Positions 5,809 to 58,497 of a stretch of DNA of 64,000 bases are shown piece after piece; within the stretch, counting starts at the first letter, position 1; each line of letters opens with the position of its first letter. Origin of the DNA: Prasinococcaceae sp. CCMP 1430 (taxonomy: Eukaryota; Plantae; Prasinodermophyta); contig RQSC01000025.1 of NCBI GenBank assembly GCA_013416795.1, positions 158,609-222,608 of the forward strand, in the 5' to 3' direction. The position numbers were made by a program, and so were the translations under genes. Below the pieces are notes generated by a model. It did no database searches, was not told the DNA's origin, and was given only the letters and a program-made list of their open reading frames with translations.

Positions 5809-7722
5809 TCACTCGTCCTCGGCGTCCTCCGCTGCGGGCAAGTTGATAGCGATGCTGAGCTCGTCGAGCTGCTGCTGAGAGACATCGCCCGGCGCGGAGG
5901 TGAGCAGGCACTGCGCGGTGGTTGTCTTGGGGAACGCGATCACGTCGCGGATGGAGCTCGTCCCCGAGAGCAGCATGACGAGCCTGTCGATGCCGAAGGC
6001 CAGCCCGCCGTGAGGCGGCGCCCCGTCTTCGAGCGCGCGCAACAGGAACCCGAACTGCGACTCCGCCTCAGCCTCGTCCATGCCGAGCGCCTCGAGGACC
6101 GCACGCTGCACGTCGGGCCGGTGAATACGCAGCGAGCCACCGCCGACCTCGACGCCGTTGTACACCAGGTCGTACGCGTACGCCATCGCGCCCTCCAGCG
6201 CGCCCGCGGATACCTCCGCGCCGCTCTCGAGGACGGGCGCGGTGAAGGGATGGTGCAGCGCCTGAAGCCTTCCCTCGTCGTTCGTCTCGAACATGGGCCA
6301 GTCGGTCACCCAGAGCACGCTGTTGGGCCTGTCGGAGCCCTCGATGAGCCCCAGGCACTCGCCGAGGTGCAGCCGCACAGCCGACAGCGACGCGGCGACC
6401 GTCGGCGCGTCGCCCGCGCCGAAGAGCAGCAGGTCGCCCTCCTCGACCGGCCCCACAGCCGCGAGGAGCTCGTCCAGTCGTTCGCCGACGATGTTCTCCT
6501 TGATGGCAGCGATGGCGTCCAAACCGCCCCCCTCGGCGATGCGCGCGTACGCCAGCCCGCGAGCGCCGCCCCGCTGCGCGGCCTCCAGCACGTCCCCCTT
6601 CTTGATGCGCACATTGCTGATGCCCTTCGCGTACTCCGCCGGCACACGGATGGCCTTGACCTGCCCGCCCGCGGACACGGCGCCGTCGAACACCTTGAAC
6701 CCGCAGCCTGAGACAATGGCGCTCACGTCAGTGAGCTCGAGGCCGAAGCGCAGGTCGGGCTTGTCGGAGCCGAACCTCTCCATGGCCTCGGCGTACGTCA
6801 TGCGCGGAAACACCTCGGGCAGATCGATCCCGCCCACGCGCGAGAACAGGTCACGCGCGAGGCCCTCGGCCATCGAGATGACGGCCTCTTGGTCGACGAA
6901 GCTCATCTCGATGTCCAACTGCGTAAACTCGGGCTGCCTGTCCGCCCTGAGGTCCTCGTCCCTGAAGCACCGCGCAATCTGGTAGTACCTGTCGTAGCCG
7001 GCCACCATGAGCAGCTGCTTGAAGAGCTGCGGAGACTGCGGCAGCGCGTAGAACTGGCCAGCCTGCACGCGCGACGCCACCACGTAGTCGCGCGCGCCCT
7101 CGGGCGTGGAGCGCGTCAGGATGGGCGTCTCCATCTCGAGGAAGCGCTCGTGATCCTCGAGGTAGCGGCGCAGCGTCTTGATGACCTCCGCGCGCACGCG
7201 CATGCGCCTCTGCATGGCAGGCCTGCGCAGGTCGAGGTGGCGGTGGCGCAGGCGCAGTTCCTCCTTGGGCGGCTCGCCCCCCGCGCTCTTCTCCTCCTCC
7301 TCCGACACGAAGAAGGGCAGCGAGGGCCTCGCGCCGTTGAGCAGCTCGATCGAGGCGCCCAGGACCTCGATGGCGCCCGTAGCCATTCGATCGTTCTGCT
7401 GGCCCTCGACGCGCTCGCGCACGTGGCCTCGCACGCACAGCACGTCCTCATAGCGCAGCGAGGCGGCGTCGGCGCTGCCTGCTCCCAGGACCTCCGGGTC
7501 GCACACCACCTGCACGAGCCCCGTGTGGTCGCGCAGGTCGACGAACGCGATGCCGCCGAAGTCGCGCACGCGATCGACCCACCCACAGAGCGTGACCTCG
7601 CCGTCCTCAGCCGCCGCGCTCTCCACGGAGGTGACCTCGCCGCAGTAGTTGGTGCGCGTCGGCCACGTCATGTCCGCCGGCGCGTCCTTCACGCCGGCGG
7701 TGGCGGCGGCCTCCGCGGCCAT
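5809..7722 (-). CDS. aspS: Aspartate-tRNA ligase, bacterial/organellar type
   Basis: RTNYCG N-terminal OB-fold, [56 protein letters not shown] and [15 protein letters not shown] motifs. The start is either 7722 or 7671. Confidence 0.96.
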
Positions 7723-9356
7723 CACCGCGCTGCTCGTGGCGGCGCCAGGCGCCTCGGCGGCACCGCGCTCGTGGGCGGCGAGTGACGCGTGGGCGACGTA
7801 CCTTGACGCGGTGCTGGTTCTTGCGCCGGAGAGCGGATCCGGTGAGCGGCTCTCGCGCCTTGATGTGGTCAAGCTAGAGGCGAATCTGCGCGCCGCTGTG
7901 GCCGACACCGTCGACCGCAGCGGCGCCACTGACGCCGAAAATGACGTGGTGCTAGCGAAGCTGTACGAGCACAGGTCGTCGGGGCGCGCTTCGGCCTGCG
8001 CGCCGCTGGACGGGGCCGGTGGCAGCTGCGTCGAAGTCGATGTGCACGTGCGTGCGACTGATGAGGCGCATGCGGCTGCCCTTGGCGAGTCGCTCGAGCG
8101 CGGCGTGGATGACGTCAGGAAGACGCTTGGAGCGCTGCGCCCGATGCGCGTAGGCCTCCGCTCGGCACACGCATGGCACGCGCCGAAGATCGAGCCAGCC
8201 ACGGTCAGCGCGCAGCTGAGGCTGGCTGCGCCGCGTGGCAGCAACGCTCTTCTCGCCGGCGATGGCACCGGGCCCGGGCATGCCGGGGAGGTGGGCCTCG
8301 CCACCGCACTCGCGCGCGCACTGAATCTGGAGCGGGCGGTGACGGTGGACAAGTGGGAGACGTACCTGGAGGTGGCACTCCTTGTCACGCCCTCGCCACG
8401 CGTCACGCCCTCAGGCGACGAGACGCTGACGCAGTCAGCGCTGCGCAGGAGCACAAGAGCTGTGGTGTCTGCCTTTTGCCAGCACCATCAACGAAATTCC
8501 CGGTTCGCACACGCACGTACATACGCAGGACATTCATGCTGTGCCGGTGCTGCTGGGGTCCCAGGCTGAGCGCTGCGATGCTGTGGGCCTGCCTACGGTC
8601 GAGCTTGGCTGCGGCCTCGTCGAAATGCGCGTCTTCGCCACCGACGTATACGAGGCGAGCATCTTGCAGCTCTTGCTCGCAGATGGATTCACGGCGAACG
8701 TGCTGGCGGAGCAGTTCGCCGCCGCGGGCCTTGCTTTCAACGCTATTGTGGAGGACTCCCATGTTGTCAGCGCACCGGGCGCGCACCCCGTGCTTCCCTC
8801 GGACATCAAGTTCGTGCAGGCGGAGGAGCTGCCGGGGTGCGCGCTCGAGGCCGACTGGCGCCGCGGCGATGCGGCAGGGAATTACGATTGCGTCGACCTG
8901 GACCTGTTCATTTTGGCGCCATCGAGCGCGAGCGCCGAGGCGCACGCCAGTGACCTGGTAGAAGTCGTCTCGGGCGAGCGGTGCACACAGGAGGAGGCCG
9001 AGAGCCGCCAATGGAAGTGCGCAGCCGTGCAGATGCAGAGCGTCGCCAACCTGGGCGTGCAGCCGTTGCTGCTGGGCGAACCCGCCACATTCGTGAGGCC
9101 CGAGGTAGAGGATGAGGCGGAGCAGGAGGAGGAATCGGGATCATCCGACGACACGACCACCGTCATTGCCTCGGCCGTTGGCGGCGCAGCCGGCGCAGCT
9201 CTGCTCGTCGTCGCAGCCGTATGGCTGCACTTTCGCCGCAAGCGCAAGCAAGGTTTCAAGTGGGTGCATTTCGACAACGCGCTCACTGAGGGCGAACCCC
9301 AGGGGGAGGACGGGATGCCGCAAGACGCCACCGCGGTGGAACTCAGCGAAGTCTAA
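7670..9356 (+). CDS. Putative type I membrane protein (signal peptide, ectodomain, single TM, short tail); probable intron ~8372..8528
   Basis: Hydrophobic N-terminus [30 protein letters not shown], acidic stalk, [26 protein letters not shown] followed by RRKRK. The two ORFs can be joined in frame by a GT..AG intron. Confidence 0.6.
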
Positions 9357-9745
9357 TCGTGCCCACAGATACGTAACATACGCTCGCAACGATGCGAGCT
9401 GCGCATGTCGGCGGTCGCACCGCGTCGTGGCCAATTGTTGCACGGCGCCGTCGGCCGCGTTGCACGGCGCCATCGCCCGCGACACATGGCGCGGCGGCTG
9501 CGAGCGCTGCGCCCGGGGCGCGTGCACAGCACTGCGCGCTGCACACGACAAAGCACCGCGCGGTGCACAGCACTACCGGTCAGATGGTTGTTGGCACATT
9601 CTGATCGTAAATCCTCATCGACAAATGACCGTACAGCACTGTAGATGTATATGCACACGAGCGGAGCGCATGGCGGAGTGCGCCACAGCGCACGTGCGCG
9701 GGGCGCAACGGCCGCCTCCCTGACGGGGTGGAGGGAGGGGCGGCG

Positions 9746-10894
9746 ATGGCGGCGACGGGCGCGGCGGACGCGCTGATGAAAAAGGGCGACAAGGCCGCCA
9801 CGCCGGGGCTGTTCAAGTTCAAGTCGGACTGGGTGGGCGCGGGCGCCGCGTACGAGCAGGCTGCGCTCAAGTACCGCCTCGCCAAGGCGCACGCGCAGGC
9901 GGCGCACGCGTATGAGAAGGCCGCCGACGCGCAGGAGAAGCAGGGTGAGAGCCGCCGCGCGGGCGCTGGCCGCACCTCGGCGCACAAAGTGGGAGGGAGC
10001 TGCCGCGCTGACCTGCGCCACGCGTGCGTTTTTCCGCCCGCGCGCCCGCCCGCGCGCGCGGTGTTGCCAAGGCGCGCCGTACCACGCCGCCAAGCATCTG
10101 GAGAGCGCGGCGAAGAGTGCAAAGGACGCTGGGGGCGATGGCGCCGCCGCGCGGGTTCAGGACCTCGCTGCACAGGCCGCCACGCTGTACTGCGAGGCGG
10201 GGCGTGCGACGACGGCGGCGGAGGCCCTCGGGAGGCACGCCAGTGCGGCGGATGCGCTCGGCGACACCGACGGCGCCGTCGGAATGCTTCGAAGGGCATT
10301 CGAGTTCTTTGAGGAGGAGGCGGAGCACTATGCGGCGGACACTTACCGCGCGGCTGTCAACATGGTGCTACGCCGCAAGCGGTGGGCCGACGCGTGCGAG
10401 TTTCTGCTCAAGTGGGGAGCGAGCAGCGGCCGCTCCAAGGCTGTCACCACCCAGTGCAGGTGCTACCTGTCCGCCCTCGTGGTGCAGCTCCACGCAGGCG
10501 ACTACGACGAGGCCGAGAGGTGCTTCAACGACTGCTGCGCAGTACCCGCCTTTTCCAGGAGCGACGCCTGCGAGGCCGGCGACAGACTGCTGATGGCATA
10601 CCGCAGCGCCGATAGCGAGCAGATCAAGGACGCCGTGAAGGTGTGTGCGCTGCACGCGCGAGCGCAGCCATTGAGAAAAGCGACTCACACGCACGCTGAC
10701 GCCCGCCGGCCGAGCGCACACTGCTTGCCCAGGGGAATGCAGCTTTCGTCCATCTCGAGAGCGCAGTGCTCAGGCTGGCAAAGGGGCTACCGGGGCCAGG
10801 GGTCGACCTCAAAGCGATGGTGGGGGCCAAGGTGAGCGCATTCGCCGACATGAAGGACATGGGCGAGGCGCTGGACGAGGACGACCTGTGCTAA
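9746..10894 (+). CDS. NAPG: Gamma-soluble NSF attachment protein (gamma-SNAP), 3 exons
   Basis: KFKSDWVGAGAAYEQAA, PYHAAKHLESAA, TPR-like helices, YLSALVVQLHAGD and C-terminal EDDLC*. Introns at 9945..10071 and from 10641. Confidence 0.85.
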
Positions 10895-11211
10895 GAGACA
10901 CGAGATGTACGCTGATTAATACAGTGCAACGAATGGCAACGGGCGTACCTGAGGCAAGAGTGACGGCTTCGCGGGGAGTGCTGGCGCTTTCGCTCTGCGT
11001 GAATAAAGAACACACGTGTACTATGCTGAGCCCCTCACGTCAGCACTGCAGCACACGCGCACGATGGCGTCACCACCGCCGAGCCCCATACGCTGACGCT
11101 CGTACCTGTCGAGCTTCTTCTACGCAGTACACTGTACAGTAGCAGGCTTCCAAAGTATCAGATTCAGGACGCGGCGTCGCGGCACCAGCGGCCGGGAAAC
11201 GCGCCGCCGCC

Positions 11212-11784
11212 TCAGACCCGGGCAGCCATGGGGGGCTCCTGTGCGGGCGGGTCGGGGAGCGCGCGCGGGCGCTACCCTGCTCCGCGGAACGCTTCCAGGA
11301 GCGCGCACCACTACCCGGCGAGCTTCTGGCGCATCCCGCGCCGCGCCGCCTCGGAGGGGAAGCTGTGCCGCTCGAGCTGCTCGATCAGAAACGCGAGCAG
11401 CGCCGGGCGGCCGGCAGCCCGGTACTTCTCGCGGTCCGTGCCCATGACGTGGTGCTACCAGACCAGGCTCTCGCTCCTCCAGCGAAACTACTGGTACGGG
11501 TGCGAACAGCTTCCCTACGTGAGTCTGCCAGAGCGCTCGAAACGCTCGAAAGCCCTCTCGATCATACGGAGCACGCCTGGCCTCTCTGCGAGGTGCTTGT
11601 AAAGCTCCGGCACTTCAAACGTGACCTCTTCCCCCTCAAACCAGGGGTCGGCATCGTCGTCATGAGGTCCGCGCGACTCGATGTGTCCGCACTCGTACAG
11701 GCACATCCGGCAGCAGAAGCAGTAAGGCTCGCCGCGTTCATCCACAGTTCTCCCGGGATCAAAGAGCCTTATGCCACCGTTCAT
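11212..11784 (-). pseudogene. Orphan gene, tandem copy 1; as written it has 5 in-frame TAG stops, all inside two complemented blocks
   Basis: Aligns to copy 2 at offset 1195 and ends in the same PPMAARV-TGA. Every TAG lies within 11257-11336 or 11442-11529, where the sequence is the complement of copy 2. Confidence 0.7.
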
Positions 11785-12406
11785 CGCGGAATGTCCGATC
11801 CAGCCGGTTCGATTGCACTGCCGTCCGAGCACTCAGCTTCGCTGCGCCTCTGCACCACCCTCACTCACGCCCCACGGCAGCGCCGCGCGCTGTGGCCGCC
11901 CCGCCGGGCGCGGCAGGCGCCGCGCGCCTCCGGCGAGGCCGGGCCATGCTCTCCTTCGCGCCGCCGCGGCTCGCGCCGCGAGCGCGTCCGCGCATCACAT
12001 CACAACGCACCGCGTGCCCGGGCGGCAGCGGCAGCGCGGGGAGGAGGAAGCCCCGCGACGCGGACGGGAGGAACGCGCGCCCCGCGAGCGGGAGGAACAC
12101 GTGCGCGTGGACGCGCGGGCGGGACGCTCATCCCGCGTTCGACGCGCGCCGCTCCAACCACCAAATCTTCGGCACGCAGCCCGGCACTGCTCGCCACCAG
12201 GGTTTACATATGTGTGCATTTCAATGCATTATGATACATGAATTCGCGCGCACGTATGTTTGGCGAGGTCAAATCTGCGTGCATCGCATTCGCATTTTTA
12301 ACCTCAAAACCGGTGGAGTGTGGTTTGGGTTCAGAGAGAAGTGAACGCAGGGGCTCATCAGCCAGGAGCGCCGCCGCTTGCGGTCGGGGAACGCGCCGCC
12401 GCCTCA

Positions 12407-13018
12407 TCAGACCCGGGCAGCCATGGGGGGCTCCTGTGCGGGCGGGTCGATCTCGCGCGCGCCCGCGATGGGACGAGGCGCCTTGCGAAGGTCCTCGCGC
12501 GTGGTGATGGGCCGCTCGAAGACCGCGTAGGCGCGCCGCGCCGCCTCGGAGGGGAAGCTGTGCCGCTCGAGCTGCTCGATCAGAAACGCGAGCAGCGCCG
12601 GGCGGCCGGCAGCCCGGTACTTCTCGCGGTCCGTGCGGTACTGCACCACGATGGTCTGGTCCGAGAGCGAGGAGGTCGCTTTGATGACCATACCTACGCT
12701 TGTCCACGGCATGCACTCAGACGGCTTGCGCTCGAAGCGCTCGAGAGCCCTCTCGATCATATCAAGCACGCCCGGGTTCTCTGCGACGTGCTTGCCAAGC
12801 CCCGGCACTGCAAACGTGACCTCTTCCCCCTCAAACCAGCAGTCGTTCATGCCGACGTCCAGACAAAGCCACCGCGTCGGTCGCGGTCCGCGCGCATCGA
12901 TGTGTCCGCACGAGTACAAACAGAGCCGGACGACGGGGTTGTTCGGCTCGCCGCGGGCATCAACAGCGAACTCAACGCGAAGTGCGTCGGTGACACCACC
13001 GCGCTTCCGATCGCCCAT
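12407..13018 (-). CDS. Orphan gene, tandem copy 2 (203 aa hypothetical protein)
   Basis: Intact ATG-to-TGA ORF. Paralogy with copy 1 shows conserved RGEP, CLYxCGHI, WFEGEEVTF and MIERAxERFER. Confidence 0.6.
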   Translation of the reverse strand: MGDRKRGGVTDALRVEFAVDARGEPNNPVVRLCLYSCGHIDARGPRPTRWLCLDVGMNDCWFEGEEVTFAVPGLGKHVAENPGVLDMIERALERFERKPSECMPWTSVGMVIKATSSLSDQTIVVQYRTDREKYRAAGRPALLAFLIEQLERHSFPSEAARRAYAVFERPITTREDLRKAPRPIAGAREIDPPAQEPPMAARV

Positions 13019-13355
13019 GGATTGGACGACAAGAGGGAGACGGGCACCCGGCGCTTGCCGCTCTCGCCCCCTCCCCTTGTCCTCACGTCACAGTCGCGCC
13101 TTCCCTCCTCAAATACTCCTCATCCATGCGCGGGCATGCGCGCCCGCCCCGGCGCCCGCGCCGCGCGCGAGCCGCGCGCCCTGTGGCGCGTGCAGGGAAT
13201 CTCATTCGTAAGCACGCTCATCCACGGCGTGCCAGCGCAGACGCATGCGCGCGCGTAGACTTTGGCATGTGAAGGCGGTTTTATTAGTTGTGAGCCCTGA
13301 GCGCGAGGGGAAGGGGGGGGGTGGCAGAGGCCGCGCGGGCGGAGATGCGGCGCGT

Positions 13356-13402
<47 letters not shown>
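13356..13402. repeat. Poly-G homopolymer (47 nt)
   Basis: Direct count of an uninterrupted G run. Confidence 0.9.
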
Positions 13403-13406
<4 letters not shown>

Positions 13407-13472
13407 GTGCCGCGCTGTCGCGCCACCGCAGCCGCACGTTGTGGGCCGCACGTGCGCACGCGCGTTGCCCAC

Positions 13473-15608
13473 TCAGTCCACCTTGCGCCCCTCGGCCTGG
13501 ACCTGCACGATACGAGCGAGCACGTCTTCGGCCCACGGCAGCTCATAAAACGGGGTGCGCTCCTTGACAGCTGCCTCGGCGTGCGCGTTGCTCACCCTGG
13601 CGAGCTGCCGCTTCTGGTCGATCACGGTTGCGCGCACGAAGTCCGCCGGTGCCTCCGCGAACGCATCGAGGAACGCGCGTCGCCGTCGGTGTTCACTGAT
13701 CTTCACGCAAAGCATGCGAATCTGCTCATCGTGGCGTTTCACCTCCTTGGAGTTGTCCGTGAGCGCGTTCACCAGCCCTGCGTTGCCAGAGCGCTTCTGC
13801 TCCGCTTCGGCATTGGATACCATGTCTACCTCGACGTCGAAGCACTGCTCAGGGCTGCGTCCAGAAGGCTCGTCGTCTCTGCCGCCAAGGGCAATGCGAT
13901 GGTCGACGACGACGGGAGCTGCAGGCTCTAGCAGGGAGTCCAGCCTGTCGACTACTTCGGAGAAAGGCACGACGTCATTGTTGTCGTCAGGGTCGCCCTC
14001 TTTGAAGCTAGCGGCCCCGGCTTCACCGTGCGCCCGGCCTGGCGCATCGAAGCGCAAGACAGCTCGCAGCTCAGCATTCAGCCTGACGTGATCGGGACGC
14101 TCCGCGTCCTGCAGCTCCTGGTGCTTGATGTACTGCCAGAGGGCCTGCAGCACACGGGGGCGTGTCTCGACTTGCGGGCCGAGCAGCGCGTGCAGAGCCG
14201 GCGACAGCTGGAATCGCGCCGGGCGAAAGGCCAAGTGAATGCGCACCCGCGCGTTGACCTCTGTTTCTCCAAGGCGGTGCAGCTCAAAGCCATCGACGGC
14301 CCTGTCCGCGGCTGCGCGAGACCACACCACGCTCCCCTCCTTTCCCGGATACTGCTGCTTGTCATCCAGCTCGATTTCCATTCTTTCGATAAATGCTGAC
14401 AGCGTCGGGGCGGTTGCCGCAGCGTGAGCGGCAGCCGCGGCGGCCCTCGCGCCCGCCCCGGCTTTGTGCGAGACCCTCGCGGGTGCAGGGCGAGAGACCG
14501 GCCGACCGTTCTCCAGCAGGCAGCCCTCCACATGCAGCGTCCAGGCGGCGGGTGCGGCGGACACGGCCGGCGACGGCGATTTGTCGCAGTTTTCGGCGTC
14601 AGCGGACTCGCCCGTGCGGCGCTGCCCCGTGTACGTGTTGAAGATGCGCAGCCTGAGCACGTGCGCCTTGCGAGACGGTCGCAGGAGAGCTTCCGCGATG
14701 TGCGCCTTCACGTTGCATATCAACGCATCGAGCCGCCGATCGAGCGCGGCGAGCTCGCAGAAGAGCCGCGACTCCGGCACGAGGCTGAGCGAGGGGAGCT
14801 GCGCGCGCACCCTGGCGGCTGCAGCCGTGGCAGCAACGGCCCTCTTCTTGTACTTTTTCTTCGGCGGCGGCGCATTGCCACCGCCGCCGCCGCCCCCCGC
14901 GCCACTGCCCACCTGGCCAGCGGGACGCTTCTCCCCAGCCGCTGCCTTCTGTACTTTGTCGGTCGCCTTTTCCGCTTTTGCCGTCGCGGCGGTGGCGGCG
15001 CTGGCCACCACAGGCACGGCCGCCGCAGGCGCGGCCACCGTGGGCGCGGCAGCGCCGCCGGCTGCGGCGGCGTTAGGGCGCTGCGAAGCGTCCGCGCCGC
15101 CGCCAACCGCGGGCGTCTGCACGCCGGCAGAGGCGCCCGCCGCGGGATGCACGGCAGCGGCGGGGTGCCCCCCCAAGTGTATGCGCACTTTGTGCGGCTG
15201 CGGCTGCGGTTGCTGCGGCTGCGCCGCCTCCTGCCGCTGCTGCTGCTGGGGCTGCTGGGGCTGGGGCTGGGGCTGCTGGGGCTGAGGCTGTTGCGCGTCG
15301 CGCGCGGCGCGGGAGGCGCATGGGTCCAATCGCCGCTGGGGCCGGCCGCGGTCCCACGAACAAAGTATCCGCCTGCGGACGCGGCCGCAATCAATCGATT
15401 GGCCAGGCCGGGCCGGCAGGCCGGGCCACGACGGCACCCGAGCGGCGCCAGCCAGCCAGCCAGCGAGCCATCCAATCCATCCATTCATCCATCCCGGGCC
15501 CTGGCCGGCGGGGCGTGGTCGCCCCGCGCGGATCAGTCGGAGATTGCGCGCAGCCGCAGATTCCGCGGCCACCGGGCGGGGCGGAGCGGAAGATGAGCCC
15601 CAATCCAT
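13473..15608 (-). CDS. SWP73: SWI/SNF complex subunit BAF60/SWP73 (SMARCD family, SWIB domain); start uncertain
   Basis: VPESRLF..LAALDRRLD, LRLRIFNT, WTLHVEG, DGFELHR, the SWIB core FQLSPALHALLG..ETRPRVLQALWQYIK, and C-terminal RRRRAFLDAFAEAPADF. The N-terminus is QP-rich and low complexity. Confidence 0.9.
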   Translation of the reverse strand: MDWGSSSAPPRPVAAESAAARNLRLIRAGRPRPAGQGPGWMNGWIGWLAGWLAGAARVPSWPGLPARPGQSIDCGRVRRRILCSWDRGRPQRRLDPCASRAARDAQQPQPQQPQPQPQQPQQQQRQEAAQPQQPQPQPHKVRIHLGGHPAAAVHPAAGASAGVQTPAVGGGADASQRPNAAAAGGAAAPTVAAPAAAVPVVASAATAATAKAEKATDKVQKAAAGEKRPAGQVGSGAGGGGGGGNAPPPKKKYKKRAVAATAAAARVRAQLPSLSLVPESRLFCELAALDRRLDALICNVKAHIAEALLRPSRKAHVLRLRIFNTYTGQRRTGESADAENCDKSPSPAVSAAPAAWTLHVEGCLLENGRPVSRPAPARVSHKAGAGARAAAAAAHAAATAPTLSAFIERMEIELDDKQQYPGKEGSVVWSRAAADRAVDGFELHRLGETEVNARVRIHLAFRPARFQLSPALHALLGPQVETRPRVLQALWQYIKHQELQDAERPDHVRLNAELRAVLRFDAPGRAHGEAGAASFKEGDPDDNNDVVPFSEVVDRLDSLLEPAAPVVVDHRIALGGRDDEPSGRSPEQCFDVEVDMVSNAEAEQKRSGNAGLVNALTDNSKEVKRHDEQIRMLCVKISEHRRRRAFLDAFAEAPADFVRATVIDQKRQLARVSNAHAEAAVKERTPFYELPWAEDVLARIVQVQAEGRKVD

Positions 15609-22372: not shown

Positions 22373-24727
22373 CATCACACAGACCCCCTTGGCGCGCGCC
22401 TCCTCGACGCGCGCAAGCTTGTCCTCAGGCAGCAGCCCAGCGTGCACGTGCGACTCGGGGATTCCGACGGTCGCGCCCACGGCCACGGCGTTCTCTCGCC
22501 TATCACCCGTCACCATCGCCACGTCGCAGCTCTCGCCGCCCCACGCGGCCTCCTTGAGTTTTGAAACGGCCTCGCGGCTCGACGCGCGCACCGTGTCCGC
22601 GAAGTACATCATCGTGACGTCCTCAATCACGTCTGTCCCTGCCACATCCTGCTGCCCCCCGCTGCTGCTGCTGCCGCCCACGCTCGCACGCATCGCAATG
22701 GTCACGTGTGTGGAGTCCACCTGTGCTGCCAGCCGACGGATGCCCGCCGCGTTGTCGGCGTTCACGCACTTCGCCGCCACGTGGTCGAGGGAGCCAAGCA
22801 CCACGCTTATCTCCTCCGAGGGCTCGCCCTCTCCGACCAGCACAGCCGTTCCCTCCACGCCGCGCCCGTGCACCTGCTTGAAAGAGCCAAGCTGCACACG
22901 CGGGAGCCGTGTGCCGCTCCTCCTGCTGGCCGCCTGCGCGCTCGCATGGCAGTGCACGACCGCTCGCGCGATGGGGTGGCTCGCGGCGTGCTCGAACGCT
23001 TCTGCGACGGCCAGCGCGCGTCTCTCGGCGCTGGTCGACGGCTGGAAGAGCTCCCTTTTCAGCAACATGTCGGCATCGACGCCCGCCACTGCGCCCGCGC
23101 TCCTCTCCCGCGCGAGCGCGTCCTCCAGCCTCTCGACGCCGATGCACACCAGCTGTCCGGTGGTGAGGGTGCCGGTTTTGTCCATGAGGAAAGTTTTGGC
23201 GTCGGCCAGCGCCTCCAGCGTGCGCGCATTGTGGACGAGCACGCCATTGCGCGCACACCTGCCCAGTGCTACGACGTACACCAAGGGCGCCATGAACAGC
23301 GCACAGGGCGCCGCGGCCGTCAGGAAGCCGAACGCCCTGTAAATGGCCCCGCTGCCGGCGTCCGCGCCCACGAGCGGCACACCAAGCACGAGCGGCGCCG
23401 CCGTGATGAAGAGCGCCGTTGCGCCTAGCACGGCCTTCGAGTAGACGTCGCCGAAGCGTTGGATGAGCGTCTGCAGCCGCGGCGCGCGGCGCTGCGCCTT
23501 GTCCGTGAGGCGCGCGATGCGCGCGGGCATGCTGTCCTCGCTCGGCCGCACGGCTTGCAGCACCAGCACACCATCCAAGTTCTGCGCCCCGGCTGCCACC
23601 TCATCGCCAGCCGCCGCCTGGATTGGCAGCTCCTCGCCGGTCAGGTGGGCCACCGACACCATCGCAGTGCCCCGCACGACGGTCGCGTCCAGCGGCACCT
23701 GTTGGCCTGCCCGCACAAGCAGGAGCTCGCCAACGAGCACCTCCTCCGCGCGTCGCAGCCTGGCGGTGCTCACGTCCACGCCGAGCAGCTCTGCTTCGCC
23801 TTCCGCGTCGCTGTCGTCTGAGTACGCGGAGGCCGAGCCCGGCGCGTCCGCCGCAGCACCGGCGCCGCTCTCGTCGAGGGCGCTGCGCGGCAGCACCCAC
23901 GCCTCGGTGGGCACCGAGTCCCACAGCGCCTTCACGTTGGCCTGCGCCCTGTCGGTGAGCTCGTCCTCCACCAGGTGCGCCGCGCCGAAGAGCACCAGCA
24001 GGAGCGCGCCCTCGAGCGCACAGCCGAGCAGCACCGTGCCGAACACCGCCAGGCTTGTGAGGACGTAGATGTTGACGTTGCCCGCGGCGACCTCGTTGGC
24101 CGTGTCCCATGCGGTGGACGCGCCCGCGAGCATGAAGACGGCGACGGTTCCCGCGGTCTGGATGCCCGCGCACACGCTCGCCAGCAGCGCATGCTCGGCG
24201 GCGCTCCGCGCGGCGACGAACGCGCACATCGCCGCGGCGGCCAGGAACGCCGCCGAGACCCCCGTGGCCCACGGCCGGCGCAGCTCGTCGACGACGTCCT
24301 CCAGGAGCTCTTTCGGCGTGCGCGGCACCAGGTCGAGGTCGTTCGCGACCTCCTCGACGGCCACTGCCGCGCTCGTGCGCCCCGAGCAGCATCCGCCGCC
24401 GGGCGCGCCGGGGCCCGCGAGCGCCTTAGGCCCTCCCAGCGATGGCCGGAACGCCCTGCGGCCTGCGGCGCCCGCGCCCGCCCCCTCGCGCGCCACGGCG
24501 CAGCGCCGCNNNNNNNNNNNNNNNNNNNNNNNNNNNNNGGCGTCGCCTCCGGGCGTTCGAGGCGGGGCCTGCCCCGCCGCGCGCGCGCTGCGCTGCGCGC
24601 GCGCCCTCTGGCGGGAACCCCGTCGCGGCCGCAACGCACCCCGAACTCGAACCGCGTCCGCGGGCCGGGTGCCCAGGCACGTCAAAATGCACGCGAGAAC
24701 CGCGGAGGGCGCCCACGTGGCCCACAT
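21242..24727 (-). CDS. HMA1: P1B-4 heavy-metal ATPase (HMA1-like) fused C-terminally to a NicO/CGF-type His-rich metal transporter domain; 29-N gap near the 5' end
   Basis: LTGE, APCAL (xPC), DKTGTLT, HP, GDGINDAPALAAAD and HEGAT motifs. The frame continues without a stop into GLHTLTGPDHLAAL, GALWGLGHDTGQ, HHHDHDH and GVLHGLQPDAL. Confidence 0.88.
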
Positions 24728-45221: not shown

Positions 45222-46333
45222 CTGCACGCGGCGCGCGCGTCAGCCGGTCGCGTCCGCATCGGCGCGCCTGCTGTGCGGGGATGCGCGGATCTCACCAAAG
45301 AGCAACTTCATAAGCGTCGTCTTGCCCGCGCCGTTGACGCCAGNGCTTCTTGATGGCCTTTTTGGAGAGCTCGGACTGGTCGGTCTTCTTCGACTCCTTC
45401 TTCTTGTTCTTGTTCTTCTTCTTCTCGCACCGAAACGGCGTTCCGCGCGTCGCTCCCGCACATGCTTTCCCTCTCATCGCCGCGAAAACCGCGGTGTTTG
45501 CGCGTGCGCGTCTCCGCGGCTTTCGCGTCCCGAACCCCGCGGCGTTTGCGCTCCCCGCCCCCCCCCAACAACGGTCGCGGGGCCGCCGCGCGACGCCGCC
45601 CTCCGCGGGGGGAAAAAGAACCCTAACGCCGCCGGAAGGGCAGGCGCAGTTGCGATGCGCTGATGAAGCTCCCGCGGAAAAAAAGAGGGCCGGCCGAGCT
45701 GTGCTCCTGCCTGTCTCTCTCCGGGCTCTTGACCGGCCGGCGGCGCCGCCGCGAGGCGCGCGGTGCGCCCACGCTGTTCATCCGGAACCGGCCGGGGGTC
45801 GCTCCGTCTGACCGAGCCCTCGGTCGGTCGGGCGATCCGAGACCTGGGGTCCTGGTTGGGCTTGCGTGGTTGGGTCGTCGGCGACGGCTGTCGCGCGCGC
45901 CGCGTGGCAGTGCACTTTTCCGGCCGGAGCGCGCCAGCCAGCCAGGAGCGATCGCTCGCTGGCTGGGCGGCTGGTCGTCGAGGCCGGGCCGACCGCGACC
46001 GCGACCGCGACCGCAACCGCAGCCAGCCCGGGCCGGCGCGGCCGCTCGGCCACCGAACACCAACACGACAACTCAAAAGCGCATCGCGCCCGCGGCGGTG
46101 CGGGCGCTTTTGGGTGGACCCTAATTTTTATCGAACCTGAATTCTGGCGCCGGGTCGGCGGGCCCCACGGGCGGCGCGCCCGCGTTTGAAAGCCGCGGCG
46201 CGGCGCGCCCGGACGGGGACGGGGACGGGGCGCCATTTCGGGGCGGGGCGGAGCGCGAAACGCGCCGGAGAGAACGGTATGCCGGAAAGGGCCAACGTAC
46301 TTTGCGGGAAACGCGTTCGGGACGGATCGCAGC

Positions 46334-49300
46334 GTGGTCTTGTCCGCGCCCCCCCTGGCGCGCCGAGCGCGGAAGCGGTCGGTTCCCCGCAGCGACCGCG
46401 GGCGCGGCAGGCCCGGCCGGTCCGCGGGTGCCGCCGCGGATGGCAGCGCGGCCGCGCCCGCCCCGCCCGTCGGGTCGTCCGCGGGAGGTGCGCCGACGGC
46501 GCTCGCGTGGCACCCGAGGCAGCGGCTGCTCGCGATTGGCTGGTCCGACGGCGCGGTCACGCTCTGGTCGCCCAAGGAGCCGAGCGCGCCGCGCGAGGAC
46601 CGTACTGCGCACAGCGAGAGCGTCACGGCGCTCGCGTGGTCGCCGGACGGCGTGCGGCTGGTGAGCGGCGACGCGCAGGGCGCCCTGTGCGTCTGGAAGG
46701 CCGACCCGCGTGGCAGACCCGTGGTCATCGTGCAGTACCAGACGGCGCAGGCGCTGGCCAAGGCGCAGGCGCTCGAGGGCGGGCCGCAGCCCTCGCCGGG
46801 CAAGGTCTCGCACATCGTCTTCAACACGAGCGAGGAAATGGCGCCCAGCAGCGAGGCCAAGGAGAAGGCGCTGCTGCCGGTCATGTCGGCGCCCTTCCAC
46901 TACGTCATCTGCGCACCGCGGGCGGACGAGAGGAGCGTCGTGTCGACGGCCGATGACCAGGGCAACCTCACGGCGGCATTCCAGGTGGAGGGCGAGGTGG
47001 CTAAGGCCCTCTTCTATCGCGAGCGCAACGGCCTCGTGCTCGTCACCAAAGAGGCGGTGCTCCACGTGAACGTGCTCCACGGCGGCGCCTTCAAGCCCAA
47101 GCTCACGTCCAAGCTGAACATGTCGGCCGAGTCCACCGAGCTGTTCGTCACGTGGGCGGGACCGCACATGCTGGCGTCCGCCGGCAATGGCGACAGCCTG
47201 GTGCGCATGCTCGATCTGGCCGACGAGGACAACTTCGCGCTGCCGCTGCTCGAGGCGGACGGCCGCGCGTCCAACGACAGGGTCGCGTGCCTCGCCTTCA
47301 ACGACGTGGGAGGCCACCTCGGCGCGGGCACGAACACAGGCAGGGTTGCGATGTGGACGAACTCGGCGTTCAGCGAGCGGAAGGCCGCCGTGGCGGAGAA
47401 CGGCGAGTTCAAGGACAGCGAGGATCAGTGGTACCGCGGCGACCTGATCGAGCTGGCCAACGCGCAGGGGCAGCAGCGCGTGGAGAGGCTGCACTGGGCG
47501 CCCACCAACCGCGGCCGCGTGCTCGCGGCCGCCACCTCCTCCGGCATCACCGTGCTGCGGAAGGCGGTGCTGCAGCGCCGCGTGTCCCAGGGCCTCCAGC
47601 TGGTGCAGATCGCCGCGAACCACCTGCACGTGTCTTCGGCCGTCGACGAGACGGCCGCGGGCTTCATCAAGACGGACCTGCAGATCGTTGGCGTGGACGC
47701 GTCGCAGGACAAGGTGCTGCTGTGGTCCGGCCGCCACGCGCAGGTGTGGGAGTGGCACGGGCGCTCGGGCGAGATGGTCGCCTCCTTCGCGTGCCCGACG
47801 GCGGCGATGGGCATTCACATGGACAGCATCTACCGCGCGGCAGGCCACGGCGTGCAGATCTGCAACCTGCAGGGCACGGTCGAGTCGACCCTCACGTTCG
47901 AAGAGGCGCACGGCGCCGTGGAGCAACTCGAGACCAACGGCGAGTACCTCGCCGCGGTGACCGCTGGGGGCGTCCTCAAGATGTGGCGCCTCGGCGGGCG
48001 CGAGCCCCAGCCGCACGGACCGGTCACGGGGCGAATGATCGAGGTGGCGGGCGCCTCCGCCGGGGCTGCGAGCAGCGTGCGCGTCAATTGCAACGGCAGC
48101 TGCGTGAGCGTCATCGTGCAGTCGCTGGGGGAGGAGACGTCGCCCATGCTGCTCGTGTACGACGTCGAAAGCGACCTGTGGGTGCGGCACAGCTGCGCGC
48201 CGTACGACCCGGTCGGGCACGCCTGGGACCTGAGCGAGCCCAAGCTGGTGGCCGTCGAGTGCGCCGGCGGGCACGGCGAGGTGACGCACGACGCGGGCGA
48301 GGTGCGCACGCTCTTCCTGTCGCCCGGCGACGGCCTCTTCCTCCAGGAGCTCGTGCCGCTCAGCTCGGAGCTGACGGGGCTCGTCGGGCTGGCCGTGCCG
48401 CACGTCTCACTGTCGCGGCGGTTGGTCGGCGCCGTCGACGAGGCATACGTGGCCAAAAAGGTCATGCGCGATTTCACGGGCATGGAGTACGTGGACGAGT
48501 CCACCGGCAAGGCGCTGCTCGACTTCAGCTACAACATGGCGCTCGGCAACATGGACGAGGCGTTCAAGAGCGTGCGGCTGATAAGAAACCCGACGGTGTG
48601 GGAGAACATGGCCAAGATGTGCGTGAAGACCAAGCGCATCGACGTCGTGGAGCACTGCCTGGCCAACATGGGGCACGTCAGGGGGGCACGAGCGATACGC
48701 GCCGCCGGCGAGTACCCCGAAGTGGAGGCGCGCATGGGGCTCGTGGCGATCCAGCTGGGCATGTTCGACGACGCGGAGCAGCTCTTCACCGAGTGCGAGC
48801 GCTACGATCTGCTCAACGACATGTACCAGGCGCAGGGCAAGTGGGGCGCCGCCATCCACATCGCCACGGAGAAGGACCGCATCCACCTCCGCAACACGCA
48901 CTTCAAGCACGGGCGGCACCTGGAGAGCGTCGGCGACGTCGCGGGGGCGATCAAGGCCTACGAGGAGAGCGGAACGCACCGCGCCGAGGTGCCCCGCATG
49001 CTCCACGGGCTGGGCCGCACCGCCGAGCTGGAGCAGTACGTGAGGGAGGGCGGCGACAAGGGGCTGTCAAAGTGGTGGGCGCGCTTCTGCGAGTCCACCG
49101 GCGCGTACGACAAGGCGATGGAGTGCTACGAGGCGGCCTCGGACGCGCTCAGCCTCGTGCGGATGTACTGCGCGCAGGGCGACTTCGCCAAGGCGGCCGA
49201 GCTGGTCAGCAGCACGGACAACAGCGCCGCCGCCTTCCACCTCGCGCGGCAGTACGAGGCGCGCGTCGGCGAGTACCGGGGCACCGCCGAGGCTGGCCGC

Positions 49301-50870
49301 ATGGCGCAGGACGCGATCAAGTGCTACGCGTCCGCCGGCCGCCACGGCCAGGCGCTGCGCATGGCCATGCGCTTCGAGCTCGACAGCGAGGTCATGGCGA
49401 TGGCCATGCAGGCGCCCCCGGCACAGGTCGGCGAGGCGGCGGCGTACTTCGACGCGCGCGAGATGTACGACAAGAGCGTGCTGGTCCACCAGCGCTGCGG
49501 CAACCTGTCCAGGGCGCTGGACCTGTGCTTTCGCGGCCAGCTCTTCGACAGCCTTCGCCTCATCGTCGACAACCTCGCGACGGGCGCCGACGCCGCGGGG
49601 GGCGGGGCGGCGAGCGCCGACGCCGAGCTGCTGGCTCGCTGCGGCGACTTCTTCATGCAGCATCGTCAGTACGACAAGGCGATGCACATGTTCGTGATCA
49701 GCGGGCGCTACCAGCAGGCGCTCGACCTGTGCGTGCAGCACAACATCGCGCTCACCGAGGAGCTCGCCGACAAGGTCACGCCTCCAAAGTCGGAGGGCGA
49801 GGACCCCGGCGCGGCCGAGCGGCGGCGGGAGGTGCTCCTGGAGGTGGCCAACATCTGCGCGGAGCAGGGCTCGTACCACCTGGCGTCCAAGAAGTTCGTG
49901 CAGGCCGGGGACAAGCTCACCGCGATGAAGGTGCTGATGCGCAGCGGCGACACCGAGAAGATCTGCTTCTTCGCGGGGGTGTCGCGGCAGCGCGAGATCT
50001 ACTTGCTGGCGGGCAACTACCTGCAGAGCCTGGACTGGCACAGCAACCCGGACATAATGAAGAACATCATCCAGTTCTACGTCAAGGCCAAGGCCATGGA
50101 CTCGCTGTCGGCCTTCTACGAGTCGTGCGCGCAGATCGAGATCGACGAGTACAGGGACTACAAGAAGGCGCTGGGGGCGCTCGGCGAGGCGGTCAAGTAC
50201 ACCAACAAGATTCGCGGGCCCGACAGGGAGGAGCGGCTGGCCCAGCTGGCGCACAAGCAGCGGCTCATGGAGGCCTTCGTGGAGGCGCAGGCGAGCCCCG
50301 CCGCCGCGATCGGCATCTGCGAGAACATCCTCGAGCACCTGCCGGCGCACGTGCCCGACCACGAGCAGCCGCTCCGCGCGGGCGACGTGTACAACCTGAT
50401 GGTGGAGTCGCACGTCGGGCACGGCGACACCGCGGCGGCGGCGCAGACGATCGAGCGCATGCGCGAGCGCATCGGCGCCATCGAGCCCTACATCGACCGC
50501 GTGCTCCTCGAGCAGGTGCTCGGGCATTCCGCGCCCGACTCGCCCGTCGGGGGCCACGACGAGCCCTTCGTCGAGGTGCGCGACGCCGCGAGCAGCGCTG
50601 GTAGCGCGCATTGCGCAGCGACGCCGCCCCTTCCGGCCCGCGCCGCGCGCCTCCTCCTCACCCCTCCGCGCGCCGGCCCCCTCACCTCCTCCCCGACCCC
50701 ACCCACATCCACACGCTCCCACCCACCACCATCCGCGCGCGCCCGGTGGCCGCCCGAGTGCTGACACGGCCCTTTCCCCCTCTCCTTGTTGTCCCGCCCT
50801 CGCCCCCCATGCCCCGCCCGCCCGCGCGCGGCAAAAGGAGGAGGTGGAGGAGGTGGACGAGGCCATGTAG
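46334..50870 (+). CDS. IFT140: Intraflagellar transport protein 140 (WD40 + TPR); last intron 50577..50837; true start not found
   Basis: LAWHP..LLAIGW, YNMALGNMDEAFKSVRLI...VWENMAKMCVKTKR.DV..CLANM, DRIHLRNTH and FAGVSRQREIY..AGNYLQSLDW. Confidence 0.95.
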
Positions 50871-52082
50871 GCAGCCTCTCGCCCGCCCGCGCCCGCCCGG
50901 CGCCCGCCGCGAGAGCGAGAGCGCGACCGGCGCCGACCGTGCCCCCCTCCTGCTCCTCCCTGTACACGTACGATTCCCCCCTCCGAACGCTGGCGCGTCG
51001 CACCTGCGCCCCCCGGCGCGCCGTGCAACCACAGGCGCGAACGCCCTGTCTGCGCGCCGCCGCGCGCTCGCGTCCCCCGCGCCCGCGGCGGCCCGGGAGC
51101 GTTCGATGAGTGTCGGAGTTGGCGCGCGCTCCGGCGGGCATCGTTCGTGGGACGGCTGGCTGGCTGTGGCAGGCTCCCCATGCCGCGGTCGGTCGGTCGG
51201 TGGGGTGGGCCTGCCAGCCAGTCAGCCGGTCGGTCTGTCGGTCGGTCGGTCTGTCGCAGCCGGTCGGGGGACGCGCTCGGCCGGATCCGTTCCTCCTCGC
51301 AGGGAGGGGGCTTTGTTGGCGCCAGCCATTCGGCCAGGCCGGCATCGCAGGATGGAGCCGGCCAGCATCCACCGATCCAGCGTCTGTCGTCAGAATGGGT
51401 GGGTAACTAGTCTAGTCAGCAGTCAGGGGCCGATGATCCACCAGCCAGCCAGCCAGTTGTCGAAAATCCATCTTCACGTCCCACGCGCGTGCATTGTGAT
51501 GGCGGCGCCCGCCGGCGGATCCGCGGCCGCCGCGCTCTGCTGTGATATGGCGCGATCGCATGCTTCCCCCGCGCGCCGTGCCTGCCTGCACGGACATACA
51601 TGAGGCGAGTCGAGAGACGAGGGCAGGCGAGTCGAGAGTCCAGGCGAGGCGGGGCGGGGCCGCCGCCGCCGCCGCCGTCCTCGTCAGCGCTCTATCCTTG
51701 GCGGCCCGCGGTCCCAGGAGGCTCCCCGCGTCCCCACTCGCTTCCATCCTCCCCTTTCTTCCGCCCTCGGCCGCGCACCCCAAATCGGCGTCCGCCTCGC
51801 GGCCAACCAACGCCAATCCTGACCGCGCGGATCCTTCGCCCGGCCGGCGCGCGCGCTCGCCACGCGCGCCGGGGGCGCCGCGNNNNNNNNNNNNNNNNNN
51901 NNNNNNNNNNNNNNNNNNNNNNNNNNNNNNNNNNNNNNNNNNNNNNNNNNNNNNNNNNNNNNNNNNNNNNNNNNNNNNNNNNNNNNNNNGCGCGCAGCAG
52001 CGGCAGCGGCGGCGGGATCGCACGCCTCGGGGCGCCCTCTCGAGCAGAGAGGAGGAGGGGGAGCGGGCGAGCGGCGGACGCC

Positions 52083-57771: not shown

Positions 57772-58497
57772 GGCGCCCGCTCGCGCGCCGCCGGCGCGCC
57801 GCGTCGGTCCAACCCCCCTCTCCTGGGCCCTTCCTGCGCACGTCCGCCTCGCACGCACACGCGCAGCCCACGCGCAGGCTCGCCCTTTGGCCCGCTGTGG
57901 CACACCGCTGTGGCACACCGCGCGCCTGCGGCCCGTGGGTGCCCCCCCCTCCCGCGCAGCACCCCCACGCACGCCCCACCCACCCACCCACCCACCCACC
58001 CACCCTTCCATCGCCGTCGCCCGCCCGCCCGCGCGCTCCCGCGCGTTCTGGATAGGATAGGGGTGCCTGAGCGCGCCGCCGCGCTTTTTGCGGCGCGCCC
58101 ATCGCATCGCACTGTTCGCGCCGAGGTGGTTTGCCGGCCGAGCGATCGAGCGGCGGATGCCCCACCCACCCGCGGACAGGGGCAGGGGGCAGATCCGCGC
58201 CCCGCACGCCCGCGCGGCCGCCGCGCTGTGTTTGGCTGGGGTTTTGGGTTTGGGCGTCGCCGGTTCGGTCGGATTCGGATTCGGATTCGGTGCCTGACGG
58301 CGGTCGCGTCGCGCCGCGGCCGCGCCGCGCCTCGCGCGCCGTCCTTGGGTTCCGCGGCGGGGCCCANNNNNNNNNNNNNNNNNNNNNNNNNNNNNNNNNN
58401 NNNNNNNNNNNNNNNNNNNNNNNNNNNNNNNNNNNNNNNNNNNNNNNNNNNNNNNNNNNNNNNNNNNNNNNNNNNNNNNNNNNNNNNNNNNNNNNNN

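Follow-up and report, generated by a model that had tools for sequence, protein, structure and literature searches.

Two short blocks within a gene in the 64,000-nucleotide stretch of DNA analysed here (the window) are written as the plain complement of the natural sequence, base for base and in the same direction. We consider it very probable (about 95%) that these blocks are an error in the sequence record, made in silico and not in vivo. The alga itself almost certainly carries an intact copy of the gene, with the complement of the written bases at 11257-11336 and 11442-11532. The feature has no biological meaning, and its value is that of a data-quality warning on this reference assembly. 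A separate phylum of green plants has been proposed for which this genome is the reference, and calls of gene-family presence and absence draw on it. Complemented patches make intact genes look like pseudogenes or erase conserved motifs, and they escape ordinary quality checks.

Two complemented blocks in a tandem gene copy

The blocks lie in one of two tandem genes, copy 1 and copy 2 (Table 1). When the two copies are compared position by position at an offset of 1195, all 80 bases of block B are the same-direction complement of their counterparts in copy 2, as are 83 of the 88 bases at 11442-11529, in block A. The 105 bases between the blocks are the same in both copies. Ahead of block B lie 43 bases common to both copies (11212-11254), followed by two differing bases and then the block; past 11529, the copies show ordinary, sparse divergence. 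Given a per-position chance of complementarity of 0.285, taken from the base composition here, the probability of such agreement by chance is about 1e-44 for block B (80/80) and about 1e-38 for the 83/88 of block A.

A preliminary description of this stretch had reported the complementarity of block B at the same offset, together with the identical stretches of about 43 and 105 nt, and our recount agrees with it. For block A, the count of 83/88 given there stands, but the block is 91 nt long and not 88, reaching to 11532. The true extent emerged from the copy-1 orthologues on three Tara scaffolds (see below); the earlier end at 11529 had been arrived at because the paralogue is naturally divergent at 11530-11531.

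Table 1. Features of the copy 1/copy 2 locus, in window positions.
Feature	Coordinates	Strand	Description and basis
Copy 1, tandem orphan gene	11212..11784	-	ATG 11784-11782, natural stop 11214-11212; translation
Block B	11257..11336		80 nt, plain same-direction complement; comparison with copy 2 and Tara scaffolds
Spacer, correctly written	11337..11441		105 nt; identical to copy 2; 105/105 to L005, 104/105 to L001 and L002
Block A	11442..11532		91 nt, plain same-direction complement; carries copy-1-specific variants
Copy 2, intact 203-aa ORF	12407..13018	-	ORF list; 202/203 to P0001
Near-identical repeat, 3' halves of copies 1 and 2	11202..11650 vs 12397-12845		Position-by-position comparison

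As written, the reading frame of copy 1 is broken by five in-frame TAG codons, at 11515-17, 11488-90, 11455-57, 11311-13, and 11272-74, while its natural counterpart is an ORF of 190-191 aa. Translation bore out the earlier claim that all five stops of copy 1 lie within the blocks. In the intact natural protein, these same five positions are Ile codons.

In a BLAST comparison of the window with its plain complement, the copy 1/copy 2 locus is the sole match. A scan of the entire window, made without any reference sequence, compared the codon-usage log-likelihood of the original and complemented forms and looked for clusters of stops beside long open frames; it was rejected as unspecific. It gives the two known blocks scores of -12 to -15, yet it yields 487 candidates, because at 68% GC long open stretches occur in every frame.

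Copy 1 and copy 2 belong to a small orphan family. No Pfam domain was matched by the family, and among 1.8 billion representatives only seven are related to the gene pair, with identities of 24-35% for the distant ones. A search for a relative with a solved structure found none. The AlphaFold model of the orphan protein is weak (mean pLDDT 61), and a fold search with this model gave no significant match.

Counterparts of the locus in environmental assemblies

A search of 5.8 billion proteins returned three clusters related to the gene pair, P0001, P0002, and P0003, every one from environmental assemblies. The first is copy 2 with a single residue changed and comes from a Tara assembly, the second is a protein of 190-191 aa that matches copy 1, and the third is a variant with a different C-terminus. 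In the P0003 protein, which is encoded on an ENA contig of 1112 nt, the first 141 residues are copy-1-like, and the C-terminus is unrelated and resembles a coiled coil. The protein may represent a third paralogue or a splice form, or it may be the product of a chimeric contig. In the copy-1 cluster, all nine full-length protein variants (from about 20 contigs) are open through both block regions.

The most informative comparison is with scaffolds from three different Tara samples (L001, L002, and L005; ERZ28653861, ERZ28654376, and ERZ28653812), which come from related marine strains and not from the sequenced culture, and which therefore give the norm of the species and not the state of the culture. 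In L001 and L002 the genes follow one another as in the window (SNAP-domain gene, copy 1, copy 2, SWIB-domain gene), L005 spans the SNAP gene and copy 1, and the DNA identity of the three to the window is 97-99.6%. Each aligns to copy 1 of the window free of gaps. L005 is exactly identical to the window at 11023-11256, throughout 11337-11441, and at 11533-11709, that is, up to the very edges of the blocks. Within the blocks, the written bases are the plain complement of each of the three scaffolds at 79/80 positions in block B and, against their copy 1, at 90/91 positions in block A. L001 and L002 thus repeat the picture seen in L005, with a spacer that is 104/105 identical. Copy 1 has an open frame of 190-191 aa in all three scaffolds, and the intact copy-1 orthologues P0023 and P0026 sit on L002 and L005.

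The uncomplemented form is also present in two Logan contigs, L003 and L004; a search for Logan contigs derived from the sequenced strain gave four, all of metagenome runs. In L003 (1-4173) and L004 (1-1895), a single hybrid gene lies between the SWIB and SNAP genes; its 5' part is copy-2-like and its 3' flank is that of copy 1. Either the repeat was collapsed in those assemblies, or the contigs show a natural haplotype with a single copy.

We then have two sets of observations that would be expected if the blocks are an artefact. First, the blocks are exact base-wise complements, collinear, indel-free, and sharply bounded, both against the paralogue and against the three orthologous scaffolds. 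Second, independent sequences of the locus, namely the three Tara scaffolds, the two Logan contigs, and the nine cluster variants, are without the transformation. That an in-silico artefact is the most likely explanation had been proposed in the preliminary description, and the proposal is strengthened by these natural sequences of the same locus, in which the bases are uncomplemented and the ORF is intact.

The sequence of block A also shows from which copy it derives. The paralogues differ at five sites in this block, and at each of them the window, once complemented, has the base of natural copy 1 and not that of copy 2. Because complemented block A fits the copy-1-specific variants, it must be genuine copy-1 sequence that was transformed afterwards, and copy 2 was not its source. 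The earlier suggestion, drawn from synonymous differences, that the block first diverged as coding sequence and was complemented later is thus upheld, both by the copy-1-specific variants that it retains and by the Tara scaffolds with their uncomplemented bases and intact ORF.

Beyond the blocks, the window and the Tara scaffolds differ in a manner that resembles normal polymorphism, as about half of the changes are transitions (42/73 and 35/78). Contigs of the same species cover window positions 7692-15300 only (7.6 kb), and we found no further complemented block in that region when it was aligned to the Tara scaffolds. For the rest of the window, JGI metagenomes gave distant homologues only, with 27-75% identity over the best segment, and the lack of further examples therefore says little about the window as a whole.

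Possible origins of the blocks

The window can be connected to a published genome through one of its genes. The ORF at 46460-50575 corresponds over about 1,360 residues to the EukProt protein PRCOL_00002319-RA of Prasinoderma coloniale, from which it differs only at residues of the upstream exon junction and in a 30-nt mini-intron. The P. coloniale assembly was made from PacBio Sequel reads with NextDenovo, Arrow, and NextPolish together with Illumina reads, with SOLiD unmentioned, and its GC content of 69.8% (PMC7455551) agrees with that of the window (about 68%). In the PRCOL_00002319 model, 30 nt at 47717-47746 are removed as a GT..AG mini-intron, with the loss of ten residues that are retained in P0034, a homologue with 66% identity. 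This mini-intron is probably an annotation error.

Given an origin in silico, we lean somewhat toward an error of strand handling, by a mechanism that we infer from the form and the place of the blocks. With the blocks complemented back, copies 1 and 2 are identical across 11257-11496 (240 nt) and near-identical over about 450 nt, and both blocks fall within a stretch of 240-290 nt common to the two paralogues. A near-identical repeat of this kind would be a place of ambiguous read mapping or placement and of ambiguous polishing. The error would have arisen during patching or polishing of the assembly within this repeat: pieces of minus-strand reads or of a local consensus may have been reversed, not complemented, and then pasted in. 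Because the reverse of a reverse complement is a plain complement, such a slip is expected to leave exact, collinear, indel-free blocks with sharp edges. Blocks of 80 and 91 nt flanking a correct stretch of 105 nt would suit pieces of about short-read length. We know of no documented bug with such a result in NextDenovo, Arrow, or NextPolish, and a literature search found neither a software bug that makes unreversed complements nor a report of errors in this assembly. A software step responsible for such blocks would be worth reporting to its authors.

The use of a complement or a reverse in place of the reverse complement is an error class met in primer lists and database submissions. Such strand-handling errors likewise give an exact collinear complement with sharp edges and no indels, from which the true sequence is regained by complementing. 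However, elsewhere they hit a whole record, whereas here the change is confined to two internal blocks, only 80 and 91 nt long, in an assembly of chromosome scale. The locus can also be compared with the false pseudogenes produced by errors of assembly or polishing, in which, as here, one of two near-identical paralogues is broken in the reference alone. These usually consist of indels, collapsed copies, or cross-copy "corrections", and a complemented block would be an unusual symptom. Block A is not a cross-copy correction, because the copy-1-specific variants are kept.

Alternatively, the file could have been altered after the assembler and polishers had run, by a slip in a script (for instance, "complement" applied to coordinate ranges) or by deliberate alteration or spiking. 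Given an in-silico origin, we regard some other file-level or deliberate edit of this kind as a real but lesser candidate; taken among all explanations, it is rather unlikely. It would suit blocks that are exact, of arbitrary length (80 and 91 nt), and razor-sharp at their edges. The window has other oddities that have no explanation at the level of the assembler, namely runs of N, 1-131 nt long, and a point at 15300 where synteny suddenly ends. The N runs are unaccounted for by the published long-read pipeline, and the history of the record is only partly understood. Moreover, the blocks are reflected in no public gene model: an exact look-up in public records of ten proteins encoded in the window, including the truncated products of copy 1, gave no entry, and a homology search with an 89-aa fragment of copy 1 found no public gene model covering the gene. 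Against an edit, both blocks lie within the repeat of the paralogues, which is troublesome for software, and a random edit needs no such site, although with one locus this is a weak argument.

Decoding of colour-space (SOLiD) data is a further route by which a stretch of sequence can be complemented. A sequence and its complement encode as one colour string, and if a single colour were called wrongly at each edge of a block, the stretch between would be complemented. The two copies do differ in colour space by a single "3" at each of the inner edges (11336/37 and 11441/42). This gives no independent support, because it is true of any complemented block by construction. A decoding slip in SOLiD artefacts can likewise complement everything downstream, but here there are no reported colour-space data, and the two other transformations that would be expected are missing. 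Colour slips should also yield blocks with A<>C/G<>T and A<>G/C<>T exchanges, seen as islands of about 32% GC; none was found in the 7.6 kb aligned to the Tara scaffolds. The window has 15 low-GC stretches, which, judged by eye, resemble ordinary intergenic DNA. In addition, the window matches a P. coloniale gene model, and the genome paper lists PacBio and Illumina reads and no colour-space data (PMC7455551). We therefore consider colour-space decoding very improbable, and it would account for little of the case even once an in-silico origin is granted. Among the three causes named in the preliminary description it is the least likely; faulty strand handling by a patching or polishing tool, or an edit, still comes into question.

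We also considered a real event, in which 171 bases in two blocks of the sequenced strain were swapped in vivo for their same-direction complement, turning copy 1 into a pseudogene. If true, this would be a hitherto undescribed process that rewrites DNA with reversed strand polarity. All that speaks for it is that the sequence is written so and that the comparison sequences come from other strains. Against it, every environmental allele is intact, and point mutation cannot turn 169/171 bases into exact complements and yet leave the 105 intervening bases, and hundreds more on both sides, identical. The plain complement of a segment is its opposite strand inserted with the polarity reversed, and we know of no polymerase, ligase, or recombinase able to insert a strand in this way. 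We regard such an event as extremely improbable.

Three further natural routes were rejected. A chromosomal inversion likewise replaces a segment with sequence derived from the opposite strand, but it gives a reverse complement, whereas the blocks keep the order of the bases and match in the same direction. Inversion of a mirror repeat was rejected because neither block is one (14/80 positions of block B and 17/91 of block A agree with the block's own reverse). Nor are the blocks those of a natural pseudogene with ordinary substitutions or indels, as 169/171 block positions are changed, each to the complementary base.

Other irregularities of the window

Several further differences between the window and the environmental sequences were noted near the locus. 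In L001 and L002, about 66 nt lie between copies 1 and 2 that are missing from the window at 11929/11930. At 12450-12451, directly before the homologue of the start of block B, copy 2 of the window has AT; of six copies on five environmental contigs, five have GG and one has GA. The AT changes Pro to Ile in the C-terminal tail and may reflect either variation among strains or a further local error. About 78 bases at 13313-13402 are extra in the window, among them a run of 47 G (13356-13402), where both Tara scaffolds have 13-15 G. Either a homopolymer artefact or an expansion of the tract could account for this.

Collinearity of the window with L001 and L002 ends abruptly at 15300/15301, a point that falls within the 5' end of the gene with the SWIB domain. 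Past this point, L001 and L002 run on with the SWIB start codon, and L002 adds a Trm112 gene and a gene for a 1514-aa protein, while the window runs on with unrelated sequence that looks non-coding. No part of the upstream 5.8 kb of L002 was found anywhere in the window. The break is either an assembly misjoin or a strain rearrangement.

The window contains eight N runs, at 761-860 (100 nt), 24510-24538 (29 nt), 25551 (1 nt), 40428 (1 nt), 45344 (1 nt), 51883-51989 (107 nt), 53288 (1 nt), and 58367-58497 (131 nt). The single N at 45344 falls within a gene for an ABC-F-like ATPase on the minus strand, between the Lys-rich N-terminal region and the Walker A motif.
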